A stretch of 64,000 nt of DNA from Pelomyxa schiedti (Eukaryota > Protista > Evosea), in contig JAHLWZ010000277.1 in the NCBI GenBank assembly GCA_020536535.1, positions 80,565 through 144,564 on the forward strand, in the 5' to 3' direction. The position numbers were made by a program, and so were the translations under genes. This document shows positions 38,658 to 49,446 of this stretch, piece after piece; the first letter of the stretch is position 1, and the number at the start of each line of letters is the position of its first letter. Under the pieces are notes generated by a model. The model was not told where the DNA came from, ran no database searches, and saw nothing but the letters and a program-made list of their open reading frames with translations.

Positions 38658-40360
38658 TCAGGTCTTCTTGCTCTTGCCGTCTGCCTTGCCGCGCTTGCGT
38701 GAAGGGGATTTGGCTTTGCCACCGTCACTGGATTCCTCCTCACTCGATTTCGCCTTTGACTTGTCCTTGGAACGTTTCTTCCCGGCCTCCTTGTCAGTTG
38801 TCTTGGTGGATTTGGTCTTGTCCTTCTTGGATGGCTTGTCTGACTTGTCGGACTTGTCTGGTTTGTCTTTCTTGTCTGACTTGTCGGATTTGTCTGGCTT
38901 GTCTTTCTTGTCTGACTTGTCTTTCTTGGATGACTTGTCTGACTTGTCCTTCTTTTTGTGGGTGTGGGCTGGCTTTTCCCCAGATTCTTCTTCAGAGGAA
39001 TGTGCCTTGTGGTGCTTCTTCTTGGACTTTGATTTGGGTGGCTCTTCTTCAATCTCTTCTTCCTCACCTGTGCTTTTCGGCTTGGCTTTTTCTGTTGCGG
39101 GCTTTTCCTTGGCAGCTGTGGTAGGCTTTGGCGCAGGCACTTCCTCTGCAGGGTGCTTGTCTTTGGATTTCGGCTCTGGTGCGTCTGCTTTGGGTGCGTC
39201 CGGTTTGGATGATGGTTTGGGTGCTTCCGGCTTAGATGAAGTTGTAGAAGTTACGCTTGTGGTGCTTGATTCCATAGGCTCCAGTGGCTCTAACTCCTCA
39301 GGCGCATCCTTTTCCTTCTCTTCATCATCATCCTCATCCACCTTCTTTGCCTTCTTTTTCCTTGACACTTTCTTTTTCTTTTCCGTACAAGACTTATCAC
39401 CTTTGTAAAATGCAATAATTCTACTGATCACATTTGCTTTTTTCCCATACGACTTGACTTTATGAGTTCTACACCACTTCCTCAATTCCTCTTTTTAAGG
39501 TAAGGGTTTATACGTTATATGTTGAATGTAAACCTGTAGTATAATGTTGAAAAAGGTCCTGTGGAGTAATATCTTCGTTGATTGGGGGTTTCGATTTGCT
39601 GATATGCAGCTTGGGCTTCTTTTCTGGCTCTACTAACTGCCATTGCAGGGTTTATTTGTAGAATAAGGAGAATGACAGGGTCACCTCTCCTGTGGCCATA
39701 GCATCAAGTATCTGTTGCTTTGTGTGATGCTTTGTTATAGGTATATCCATAGCCTTAGCGCATTTACGAAGAAGTACGTGATCACACTGTGTTTAGAATT
39801 AGGGCTAATTGAGGTAGTTGAAGTGCACAGTTCGCATAAAGTTTTCAATTCCACGGGCGATAATTTCCTCTGCAATGAGTTGCCGAACGGCATCAGGGGA
39901 TTTGTCTTCAGTCCTATAGTTGGTGAGGGAGGAACTGTCGTTTTGAGGGCAGTGTACTCGTTCATTCCGAGGGCTTCCGTGAACAATTCCAGTTTGTCGT
40001 CCTCAACGTGTGCAAGGTATTTCTTGAGTTGTGGTGAAACGGTAAATCAAAAAGCAAGGGTACTACAGTCAATCCCACGTGCTCTACGTCGCCAACAAGA
40101 AACCGTGCGTAAGCCGCCTTCGTGGAGTACCTCCGGCTGTCGTCGAAAACGACCACCGATGCCATGTGCTCCTTCGGCATATTAGAGCAGAGGTACGTCG
40201 TGCCGATGTGCACGATTTGCTGCCGAATGTTGTCCACGATCTCGACCTCTGTCATTTTCTCATCCAGTTTGACCTTCGAAGCAGCCAAGATCTCCTTCTT
40301 GAGGCGCAGTGGTAAACTCAATATCGCCGCTAAGTGTGGGTCCTGGTGCCCGCGCGACAT
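38658..40360 (-). CDS. SAP-domain protein with helical repeats and a Lys/Asp/Glu/Ser-rich tail (chromatin-associated, DEK-like layout)
   Basis: ELRKWCRTHKVKSYGKKANVISRIIAF is a SAP motif; KDKSDK/KDKPDK tandem tail; ATG at 40360. Confidence 0.65.
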
Positions 40361-43326: not shown

Positions 43327-43661
43327 CTATTCTTCATTGGCGCTAGACCACTTCGGGGAATGCATCCACTTCGGGGAGTGCATCTGCCTGGTGGCGGCCT
43401 TGTTGGCCCACTTTGGGGAATGCATCCACTTCGGGGAGTGCATCTGCCTGGTGGCGGCCTTGCTGACCCACTTGGGTGAATGCATCCACTTTGGGGAATG
43501 CATCCACTTAGGGGAGTGCATCTGCCTAGTGGCCATTGGACTTGCCTGACGAGAAGCATCAACCTCCTGCACAGTATTACCAGACAAATAAAAGGAGTTA
43601 ACTGTACCAAAATAATGCAGCAAATAAGCACTACAAGGAACAGAATATATAGTGGCGACAT
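43327..43661 (-). CDS. 97-aa secreted repeat-peptide precursor: signal peptide + 7x MHSPKW
   Basis: Exon 1 (43661-43608, MSPLYILFLVVLICCIIL), a 41-nt GT-AG intron (43607-43567) and exon 2 (43566-43327) give EVDASRQASPMATRQ(MHSPKW)3VSKAATRQ(MHSPKW)2ANKAATRQ(MHSPKW)2SSANEE*. Repeat variation is entirely synonymous in this frame. Confidence 0.85.
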
Positions 43662-43728: not shown

Positions 43729-43734
43729 TATATA
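43729..43734 (-). promoter_or_regulatory. Putative TATA element of the peptide-precursor gene
   Basis: TATATA about 70 nt upstream of ATG 43661, followed by an A-rich leader. Confidence 0.4.
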
Positions 43735-44181
43735 AGCACGAGATGTGCAACTGCGCACTGGAAAAAAGCTGATAAAAACGCCAGAAACCCGGCCCCAAAA
43801 CAGACGTTTTTTTTTTCTCGAGAAGAGTGAAGATCGGGTGGATATAACGATTATTAATCAAAAACCCCATCTGCTCCGAGAGTCTCGGAGAATCTGCTCT
43901 TTCGGCTAATTCTACTGAGAAGTCGAAAGAAATGGCTGAGCGACGATAACGAAAATGACGGCGTTCCGGTCTGTTGATTATTTTATTCAGCCATTAATGG
44001 CTGCATCAACACCCGAACTTTTACCGTCGTCGCAGGATAGGTCTGGCGTTTTTTTTCTTCTGCCATATGTTTGGGCCAAACAACCTCCAGTAACAAGCTT
44101 TTCTTCGTCGGTAGGTTAGTGTGTTGGGGCTGCAGAAATAAGCCTCTCGACCTTCTGCGTAACACCTTTCACATAATCAAA

Positions 44182-45845: not shown

Positions 45846-46214
45846 ATATCAATAGTCCAACAGTGCATGCAACAAACTCTTTTTTTTTAGTTTGCGGGTC
45901 CGTTGTACCTCCTTGTGCAGGCACACTGTTGGCTCTATCAAGTACCCCAACTCCACAAACTCTGAAAGAAAATTTTGAAATTCCACAGGGTTCCCTGGGC
46001 TTCGCTTGGTAGGTTTTCGGCCGCGATGATCTGAGGTTTTCCACGAAAATCAATTTTTCCCTGGGCTATTGCCTACTTGGGCCATCGTTCCCAGCTCGGC
46101 GACCGAACACAGCTAAGGGAAACAATTTCTTTGTTTCTTTTAGTCGCAGTGAAAGATCATTTAGTTATTGTTTTTCTTTGGCACCGCAAGCGTTCGCCTC
46201 GTTGCCGTACCTCA

Positions 46215-49200
46215 ATGAGTGGTGGTGGGAAAGTGTCATCTTTCCGCGATGTGCACGGTCACAGGAATGAAACAGCTGCCACTACTACAGCGACTGCTAC
46301 CACTACTACTACAACAACAACCCCCACCGTGCGTGTACAACCGCCCTCGGAACCAACCACGCCACACCGACAAAGGCCGAGGCTTCCGAACGACGTCCCT
46401 GTGGCCAACGTCGTGGTCGACACGAGAGGCGGGAGCTTCCCCGTCGTTGGCGCCTGGACTTCTTCTTCTGCTGCTTCTTCCTCTTCTTCTCCTCGTAGGA
46501 CTGGTGCGCCCGCGACGGTCGTTCATGTCAGGCCAACGACCTCCTTGGCATCACAACATCCCGGCGTCAATTCATCCCTCCCAAAAGTACGCCCCGCAAC
46601 GTCGCCCGACTGCCAAAACGCGCCGCCCGCGACCTTTGCTCCCATCTCCTCGTCGTCATTTGACCCGGGCGAGATACCGCCCCCGTCGCCAAAAACCGGG
46701 GGCGGTGGCAGTGGCAGCAGCAGGAGCCACAGGACGCACGGCTCCAACAAGGCCATTCACACTCTTACAGTCGACACCACCATTGCGTCCGTTGCCACGG
46801 TGACAACCACGACTCCAGAGTCGACAAAGACGGAAGTTCTGTCAACAACAAGCACAACGACGAGAACAACGACGCCCCTCAGAGCTAAGCACACATCTGC
46901 ATCTGTAATATTAAAAACCACTGTAACAAGTTCCACTGATTTGAGTGTTGCTGCAACACCGGACTCTACTGTTCCCCAACAAGCAGTCGAACCGCAAAAC
47001 ATCACTGAAGAGGCTGAGGCTGATTGTACGAATCAGACACTTAATACTGAAAACCCGCTTTCCCTCAATGTTTCAGGAATTATTGAAGAACCACTTCAAA
47101 AAGAATTGTCAGGAATCGAATTAAACGAGGTTTCAACAATGGCAGCCATGGCTTCCTCTGCTGCTAATGCTCTTGCTGCTACCGTAAACCCCCGGGACGC
47201 AAAGACTCCACACTTTGAGGAAGAACCTGATGTTCTTTCTGCCACCGATGTTCTGGAAGCAGCTCAAGTAGTAATGGCTCCTCCAAAAGTCATACCTCCG
47301 GCCCAGCTAGCAGCTGAGGCTGCATCTGCAGCAAGTAAGTTAGCAGCAGAGAAAGCTGCCAGCCATACTGGGTGGTTACGGAGGGCCGATAATGTCACAC
47401 GGTTTCTTTTTTGTTGCCCAACAAACCAGCTTCTCAAAGAAGTTTTTATTGCACTAAAAATGGGCTGGCCTGTGTGCCTATGCTACTTATTCCAAACGAT
47501 ACTGACTTCAATCAACCTTACATTTGTGGGGCACATAGGAGAGGATGAACTTGGTACGTACTTCCTTACTTGAGTGATGTTAACTCCACTGCTCAGCTGC
47601 GACATCCCTTGCCCTGATGGTAGTAAATGTTAGTGGATTTAGTTTTGGAGTTGGACTTCTCGGGGCCATAGATACACTTTCGTACCTGTGATATTTTGAT
47701 TAATTTATAGCTCACAGTGCATCAATTGAAAAAAAAAAAATAGATCCCAAGCATTTGGTGCTGGAAACTGCAGAAGAGTCGGGATCATTCTTCAAAGAGG
47801 TACGACCTTTCAAGGATATTTTTTTTCCTTAGGATATTCCCTAAGCGGTTTTGATGCTTTGGGTCTATTGTATCCCAGTAATTGGCCTTTGGTGCAGTGC
47901 CGAATATATACTCATTCTTGCAAAGCAGGCACTTTACAAAGCTACCCCTCACTACCTTACACTTGAAATAAGGACCCAGATATTGTGAAAATGGCTTCGA
48001 AATATGTCAAAATACTCATTCCTGCTTTACCATTCTACTTTCTTTTTGAGGCCCTAAAAAGAACCCTTCAGACACAAGGAATCACATTCCCCATGATGGT
48101 ATGTTTGATGCCACTGACCCCTGATTGACGGAAATAGGTAATTGCTCTTGTCTCCCTTGGAATTTTGGCTCTTTTCAACTACATTTTCATCAATGTTTTA
48201 AATCTTGGATTTATTGGTGCGCTTACCATTTTTTCTCGTCAGAGCTGAATTCATGTTTGTTAGGATCTGCAATTAGTCTCGATATAACATGGATCTCTAT
48301 GCCTATCATGTTAATAATCTGGATCCTTGTAAGAAAGCTCCACTTAAAGTTTGTACTTGTTTTCTTCCTTCCTGCTTAATTCTTTACTTAGGATGTGGAA
48401 AGGATTTTCAAAGGAAGCCTTGAAAAATTGGCCCACATTTTTATCTTATGGAATACCTGGTGGACTTATGTCGTGTGCTGAGTGGTAATTCCCGTTTAAC
48501 CGGATTGTGGACTTCGTACTGATTTCCTCCAGGTGGGGTTTCGAAATAGTCTCAGTACTCACTGGTACTCCTCTTTTGTGAAATCTCTTATAGTCACTAT
48601 CCCCGTAGGGATAATTGGCAAAACTCAATTAGCCTCTAATATGGTTGGAATGAATACATTGTCCATCTTGTTAATGGTTTGTCAAAACACATAACTGGTA
48701 TAACCTAACAAGCAAGACAAGGTTCCACTTGGAATGAGTACTGTAGGATCCACTCAGATTGGCAACTGCTTGGGTGCAAACGATGGCAGCAGGGCAAGGT
48801 AAGGGAAATTCCCGTATAAGTAACACAGAGATTTATTAGGGTTGTCACACGAGTAGCAATGGCCATTACTGTAATTGCTGAAGTCATCCAAATACTCGCA
48901 CTTCTTGGACTCCGTACTGTGTGGGGAAAGATATTTTCCGATGATCCCGATGTCATAAAACTCGTATTACATATTCTCTTCGTTTACGGGTTTGTTTCTC
49001 ACCCAACAACAACAAAAAAAAAGGTTTCCCAGTTGCTTTTATTGTCCTGTTCTTTCATTATGTTTGACGGGTTACAAACATATGGTTCGGGAATCCTCCG
49101 TGGGTGTGGAAAACAGAAGATCGGAGCTTTAGGAAACCTCGCTTCATTTTATGTAGTAGGAATACCCATTGGTGCCGTACTTGCTTTTGTTGTTGGAATT

Positions 49201-49446
49201 GGGATTTTTGGGCTTTGGATTGGAATTGGGGTGTGTTAACCAACCCTTTGTGAATCACTCCCAACGTATTTGCTCTAGATTTCTGTCTTCCTTACAGCAC
49301 TTTCGTTTTCCCTAATCATTTACAAAACGAAATGGGACAAACTGGCACAAGAAGTACATGAAAGAGAGGCCTCCAACCCTGACGAATATGACCCGGGACT
49401 CTCTCGGGCCCTTAGTGATGCCTTCATCCAGTCTACTGGTGTGTAA
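46215..49446 (+). CDS. MATE family multidrug/toxin efflux transporter with a ~400-aa disordered N-terminus
   Basis: FVGHIGEDEL, GAIDTLSSQAFGAGN, ILQR, QDPDI, LQTQG, EWWGFEI, IGNCLGAN, FDGLQTYGSGILRGCGKQKIGALGNLASFYVVGIPIG, GLWIG. Confidence 0.96.

Follow-up and report, generated by a model that had tools for sequence, protein, structure and literature searches.

A two-exon gene for a predicted secreted repeat peptide in Pelomyxa schiedti and a sister locus with two ancient alleles whose repeats are unalignable

The window analysed here, a 64,000-nt stretch of the genome of the anaerobic amoeba Pelomyxa schiedti, carries on its minus strand a small two-exon gene whose start codon lies at 43661 and whose second exon ends at 43327 (Table 1). 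The layout proposed in an earlier note on this DNA, namely an 18-codon hydrophobic exon, a 41-nt GT-AG intron (43607-43567) and seven copies of MHSPKW, was found exactly as described. The first exon encodes 18 hydrophobic residues with a mean Kyte-Doolittle value of 2.86. The neighbours of the gene are a lipase-like hydrolase, Ten1, an unknown gene and a MATE exporter, the last of which (46077-49239) starts about 2.4 kb upstream and has a long Thr/Ser-rich N-terminal extension.

Table 1 Features of the repeat-peptide gene and its upstream region in the window.
Feature	Position	Strand	Remarks
Exon 1	43608..43661	-	18 codons of predicted signal peptide; conserved part of the family
Intron	43567..43607	-	41 nt, phase-0, GT-AG; position matches both relatives
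V-D-A, predicted signal-peptidase -3/-1 site	43555..43563	-	Predicted from the -3/-1 rule; V-D-A and A-D-A in the relatives
Exon 2	43327..43566	-	79 codons and stop; predicted mature chain 75 aa, pI 11.6, no Cys, no predicted fold
Repeat block 1	43468..43521	-	3 MHSPKW copies
Repeat block 2	43408..43443	-	2 MHSPKW copies
Repeat block 3	43348..43383	-	2 MHSPKW copies
Upstream motif CAGTTGCA	43729..43754	-	In 3/3 copies of the family; a TATA-like stretch follows, degenerate in C1619
Internally deleted copy of a ~90-nt high-copy MITE	43931..43995	.	About 270 nt upstream of the start codon

Among the seven MHSPKW cores the variable columns are third codon positions only (6, 9 and 12), which bears out the earlier observation that all core differences are synonymous and is consistent with selection on the peptide; the crude chance of five changes all being synonymous is 7e-5, for copies that are not independent of each other. 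The unspliced frame and a plus-strand frame are also open over the repeat, and the same core changes alter residues there. A degenerate pattern for the hexapeptide matched seven places in the 52-Mb genome (52,367,397 bases in 5337 contigs), all of them in this gene, and the reversed control matched none. The CAGTTGCA motif occurs once in the window (0 in 100 shuffles) and, together with the TATA-like stretch, is likely to represent the promoter. The MITE copy further upstream is probably incidental. This element has terminal inverted repeats GGCTGAATAAAA, a 4-nt A-N-N-T target duplication in the seven copies read and 340 candidate places on many contigs; the window copy (43931-43995) lacks most of one arm. 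Collectively, these data support a real, selected two-exon gene that would encode a small secreted repeat protein in this amoeba.

The earlier note had suggested a search for paralogues with the same leader and other repeats, and DNA searches of the genome revealed two, on contigs C476 and C1619. Both share with the window gene the leader exon, a 40/41-nt intron at the same codon, a small-Asp-Ala motif immediately after it and the upstream CAGTTGCA motif. The C1619 gene is deposited as a spliced protein of 101 aa (Pelo_18072), and the unspliced frames of both relatives end early at stops. Because both relatives keep the 40/41-nt GT-AG intron at the same codon and one of them is deposited in spliced form, the splice of the window gene is very likely real. 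The leader is likely a signal peptide, since it fits the -3/-1 rule and a small-x-Ala motif (V-D-A, V-D-A and A-D-A) is found in all three copies. The leader exon is well conserved among the three (pN 0.07-0.17), and the second exons are unalignable beyond chance, save for a marginal match between the window gene and C476 (57/1000 shuffles). The C476 product is an Arg-rich chain with two copies of a unit containing RWQSARG; that of C1619 consists of five uninterrupted 11-residue units around RWGLK. The plan of cores and spacers in the precursor layout proposed earlier is absent from the relatives; a segment once read as a spacer in the window gene resembles the repeated piece of the C476 allele.

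The three second exons are alike in composition. Their predicted mature chains are 75-85 aa long, lack Cys and have hardly any acidic residues; basic residues recur every few positions, the pI is 11.6-12 and the net charge per residue is 0.15-0.24. A Lys or Arg directly precedes 14 of the 15 Trp across the three chains, and Gln accounts for 18 of 83 residues in the C1619 chain. A basic composition with Trp next to basic residues is typical of Trp/Arg-rich antimicrobial peptides. For the window gene, AlphaFold predicted coil for exon 2 alone (pTM 0.14; a single-sequence prediction and weak evidence), the helical hydrophobic moment is modest (0.43), and every repeat unit contains a Pro.

Searches beyond this genome revealed no relative. 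Protein searches used exon 2 alone, with Pelo_18072 as proxy for the family, the 18-aa exon being too short. Exon 2 found nothing in a collection of 5.8 billion proteins, and against 1.84 billion representatives it gave eight weak repeat matches, none of which is a short secreted protein of the same plan. The Pelo_18072 leader matched itself alone in the protein collection, a search of the ESM Atlas gave no usable match, a metagenome scan for the leader pattern gave zero, and one with the kinase exon of the sister locus (see below) gave a single spurious bacterial match. Pfam returned nothing significant for the peptide, no sequence match to a known antimicrobial family was found, and the spacer pattern of the window gene occurs elsewhere in the genome at chance level. 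The protein collection holds one of the three copies, the C1619 allele, and neither the window gene nor the C476 allele. A model of the leader also gave weak matches at C320:4385-4760, C4921:386-530 and C830:53615-53796 (E 2e-12 to 8e-6), which are either further members or A/T-rich noise.

The C476 and C1619 genes are alleles of one locus, distinct from the window locus and called here the sister locus. Apart from the repeat exon, all 4224 nt of contig C1619 run collinear with C476:32746-36919, and the contig shares exactly 121 identical nt with C476 at each end. Seven amplified single cells were co-assembled for the published genome, with 121 as the largest k-mer (PMC8887013), so identical ends of exactly this length mark a bubble of the assembly graph. 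The identity of the two contigs falls from 99-100% at the bubble ends through 93% to 62-75% around the peptide gene, where the repeat exon becomes unalignable. Directly downstream of the peptide gene, the first exon of a primase large-subunit gene shows pS 0.63 and pN 0.10, with pS about 0.2 further off, indicating that most of the divergence in the flanks is silent and of long standing. The locus was also examined in four single-cell DNA runs from the sample (X1-X4), over 5,900 nt (L040:2001-7900). X3 carries the C476 haplotype alone, on one 35-kb contig with no differences, X4 the C1619 haplotype alone at low depth, and X1 and X2 both; all 25 variants listed inside the bubble match C1619, and X2 carries the C1619 haplotype on into the same flanks at 1.3-2% difference. 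A tandem or segmental duplication is ruled out by the k-mer-length identical ends, the shared flanks in X2 and the single haplotype in X3. The haplotype differences among the runs may reflect mixed culture genotypes or amplification dropout; contigs cannot show absence. At the start of the C476 scaffold, C476:1-741 is a 98% copy of C476:37327-38067, a placement like that of the segment C277:1-6881 described below; alternative haplotypes may have been attached to scaffold ends by RNA-based scaffolding.

Alleles with a divergence peak that decays into the flanks, a feature of long-term balancing selection, are thus present at the sister locus, and such selection may be the cause of their age, an argument that in a single strain rests on one haplotype pair. 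Long asexual divergence or introgression could have produced the deep divergence instead; the sharpness of the peak argues against a genome-wide cause. As a control, about 80 kb of the window and C476 was surveyed with nine 9-kb queries. One more collinear stretch of deep divergence emerged, between window 17215-24068 and C277:1-6881 (76-84% identity). It covers a 1754-aa helicase-RING/IBR-PARP-WWE gene, which looks defence-like. The C277 copy is possibly an alternative haplotype, and allele and paralogue both fit. Such divergence is hence not unique to the peptide locus, and its recurrence falls on a defence-like gene. In the same region, C2082:1-121 and window 17912-18032 have exactly 121 nt in common, a match that suggests a further branch.

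On the other side of the peptide gene, the sister locus encodes a single-pass receptor kinase (C476 about 35594-39000, plus strand; L040:5594-9000) with a signal, WIF-like, EGF and CUB regions, a transmembrane segment and a kinase domain. The peptide and the kinase start on opposite strands, their start codons lying 169-178 nt apart on either side of one conserved upstream motif. Between the alleles, the kinase ectodomain shows 15 mostly conservative differences in about 395 residues (about 96% identical), with dN 0.01-0.03, dS 0.2-0.3 and dN/dS of about 0.1. The ectodomain is nearly constant while the putative ligands are unalignable, so the two do not look like a co-diversified ligand-receptor pair. 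Tight linkage of a polymorphic, predicted secreted ligand to a receptor kinase is found at the sister locus only. Furthermore, kinases are very abundant in this genome (1137 candidate places), so the adjacency may be a matter of chance.

The window gene represents a second locus. Its leader is present in 4/4 runs, the X3 and X4 contigs both break at 43433, exactly as the first repeated 31-mer predicts, and neither an alternative contig in the genome nor a second allele, including in the four runs, was seen. The different neighbours, the presence in all four runs and the break shared by X3 and X4 rule out a third allele of the sister locus. The intron of the window gene matches that of C476 at 30/41 positions, against 25/46 between C476 and C1619, and at synonymous leader sites the window gene and C476 (pS 0.15) are closer than the two alleles are to each other (pS 0.38). 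We infer from these comparisons that the window gene probably arose later, by duplication from the C476 lineage after the alleles had split, and the numbers are small enough that gene conversion could also account for the closeness. The simplest account would be a DNA-level copy, promoter and intron included, followed by amplification of another short piece. A lipase paralogue on C721 has an importin-like gene upstream and no peptide gene there. C721 also has four matches to window 12141-42897 at 67-79% identity, inverted but collinear across about 30 kb, and two matches link C830 with C476; both sets of matches possibly reflect an old segmental or genome duplication in Pelomyxa.

The earlier note had seen kinship with Kex2-processed repeat proteins and dikaritin RiPPs, and this claim fares poorly. 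What defines the fungal proteins is a KR, RR or KK pair separating the repeats (PMC6339444). The predicted mature chain of the window gene has near-identical internal repeats and no KR, RR, KK or RxxR, and each relative has one dibasic site, outside the repeats. UstYa/DUF3328 had no match in the genome, a weak result since the control genomes gave none either, and no tailoring gene was found among the scanned neighbours of the window gene. The absence of dibasic sites largely refutes the fungal-type reading, in which cyclic or cross-linked peptides would be released. It keeps in its favour the identical repeated units behind a predicted signal peptide and the MATE exporter gene, which has no counterpart adjoining the sister locus, and we regard it as hardly credible; the wider reading of the gene as a precursor or RiPP is a weak one.

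Discrete peptides might be set free by cleavage at single basic residues. All seven His of the window chain lie three residues after a Lys or Arg, and only if the chain were cut after a single Lys or Arg would a free Xaa-Xaa-His N-terminus of the ATCUN type arise. A programmed multi-copy precursor could in this way yield hexapeptides in the register [Q/W]MHSPK, with His at position 3 as a Cu/Ni site for metal capture or metal-assisted killing. Xaa-Xaa-His N-termini do bind Cu and Ni (PMC7701195), the seven cores are identical at the protein level, the C476 allele has one similar R-Q-I-H, and the genome contains a proprotein-convertase P-domain above the Pfam cut-off (C976:13159-13308), a candidate kexin/furin-like protease. 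However, a single event was copied to give the seven His, the C1619 allele lacks the motif, pyroglutamate at Gln would block the metal site, no dedicated protease was found nearby, and dibasic and RxxR sites are lacking here too. We consider such a precursor quite unlikely. An equally low probability attaches to a role in the cell coat, mucus or cyst wall as a structural or adhesive protein: the disordered chain, cationic and rich in Gln and Lys, would be used intact and would condense with polyanions or be cross-linked. The disordered repeats, their fast turnover, a composition rather than a sequence held in common and the Gln content of the C1619 chain agree with it; the chain is nevertheless very short for such a role, every core residue in the window gene is strictly conserved, and the role alone predicts no ancient allelic peak.

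A further reading is a self/non-self or mating-type signal, in which the peptide would be a ligand, possibly for the EGF/CUB kinase, the alleles would mark cell types, and the window copy would provide a shared signal from a second locus. The closeness of the two start codons around one conserved motif, a divergence that peaks on the peptide and looks ancient, as at compatibility loci, the different allele content of the runs and a duplicated multi-allelic pheromone locus in Euplotes crassus (PMC10393739) all speak for it. Against these stand the nearly invariant kinase ectodomain, the sheer number of kinases, the lack of a receptor-kinase neighbour at the window copy and the dropout to which allele differences of amplified single cells may be due. 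On balance we hold a recognition signal to be unlikely, and its bolder form, an archamoeba self-recognition or mating-type system with an ancient two-allele ligand locus sharing its promoter with the receptor kinase and a duplicated ligand common to all cells, to be decidedly improbable. The window copy might also be a silent duplicate, with the sister locus alone in use. Its absence from the protein collection, which holds the C1619 allele, would fit, but the C476 allele is likewise absent; the frame, splice sites and upstream motif of the window copy are intact and the cores amplified in it differ by synonymous changes only, so that a silent duplicate is very improbable.

The reading that we tentatively prefer is a family of secreted, disordered, Trp/basic peptides for defence or symbiont control under balancing selection. 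The composition, the constant leader with a variable body, the old alleles and a host that lives among prey and three endosymbionts favour an antimicrobial effector. P. schiedti feeds on bacteria, and one of its three endosymbionts is probably parasitic (PMC10579272); divergent balanced alleles are known at a frog antimicrobial-peptide locus (PMC2582982). The defence-like gene under the other deeply diverged stretch also agrees with this reading. A small Pelomyxa family of secreted, unstructured and strongly cationic chains would thus have kept its leader and had its mature part rebuilt by repeat amplification. If expressed, the chains would most likely serve as membrane-active or polyanion-binding effectors against microbes (prey, parasites or endosymbionts), either uncut or once loosely cleaved at single basic residues. 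The sister locus would keep its two very old alleles by balancing selection, and the window gene would have been copied from the C476 lineage into another neighbourhood before its repeat was replaced. The modest hydrophobic moment, the Pro in each unit and the lack of a second allele at the window locus count against the effector reading, as does the low synonymous diversity of the frog locus, the opposite of the deep linked divergence seen here.

The value of the case lies in the family, in which a locus for a predicted secreted peptide has ancient alleles that cannot be aligned and a second site carries a duplicate. Limited full-text searches turned up no paper on Archamoebae that describes a balanced peptide locus or a family of secreted repeat peptides. 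A common leader joined to repeat bodies that cannot be aligned points to a gene acting at a biotic interface. Short as they are, the chains can be synthesized, which makes the control of bacterial and archaeal tenants by Pelomyxa, as well as self-recognition or mating, directly testable; a recognition system, if true, would be the first genetic handle on compatibility in Archamoebae. Small alternative-haplotype contigs of the assembly mark such genes, and gene catalogues miss them (1/3 copies found).

Among known systems, the cationic Trp/Arg-rich antimicrobial peptides share with the Pelomyxa chains the net positive charge, the Trp beside basic residues and the short length. The precursors of frog skin peptides have a conserved leader. 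Frog brevinin-1 loci resemble the sister locus in having several highly divergent alleles at one effector-peptide locus and a variable cationic mature part (PMC2582982). Each frog precursor carries a single helical peptide along with an acidic spacer and a dibasic site, and silent diversity among the frog genes is low; the Pelomyxa genes have neither spacer nor such a site, and show unalignable repeat alleles, very high linked silent divergence and no sequence kinship with them. The KEP, alpha-factor and dikaritin precursors of fungi likewise place near-identical short repeats after a signal peptide, here a predicted one (PMC6339444, PMC7329392), but the Pelomyxa chain lacks both their dibasic pairs and STE13 dipeptides between repeats, and no DUF3328 gene was found. 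The mat-locus pheromones of Euplotes are likewise small proteins secreted by a protist, with several alleles at one locus and a second, duplicated one (PMC10393739). These pheromones form helical globules rich in disulfides, their alleles can be aligned and their role in mating is known, whereas the Pelomyxa chains are Cys-free, disordered and repetitive. Short islands of extreme divergence in a low-divergence background are known from the hyper-divergent haplotypes of C. elegans (10.1101/2020.07.23.218420), where the evidence is population-scale, in contrast to one haplotype pair from one culture in Pelomyxa.

At the Brassica S-locus, a small polymorphic secreted protein (SCR/SP11) lies next to a single-pass receptor kinase (SRK) within an ancient allelic divergence, and the SRK ectodomains diverge with their ligands. 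The sister locus of Pelomyxa is similar in that a polymorphic peptide gene adjoins a single-pass kinase gene within ancient divergence, and differs in its nearly identical kinase ectodomains and in a peptide devoid of Cys. The pattern of a constant leader with old, divergent alleles is one that defence peptides and self-recognition signals have in common.
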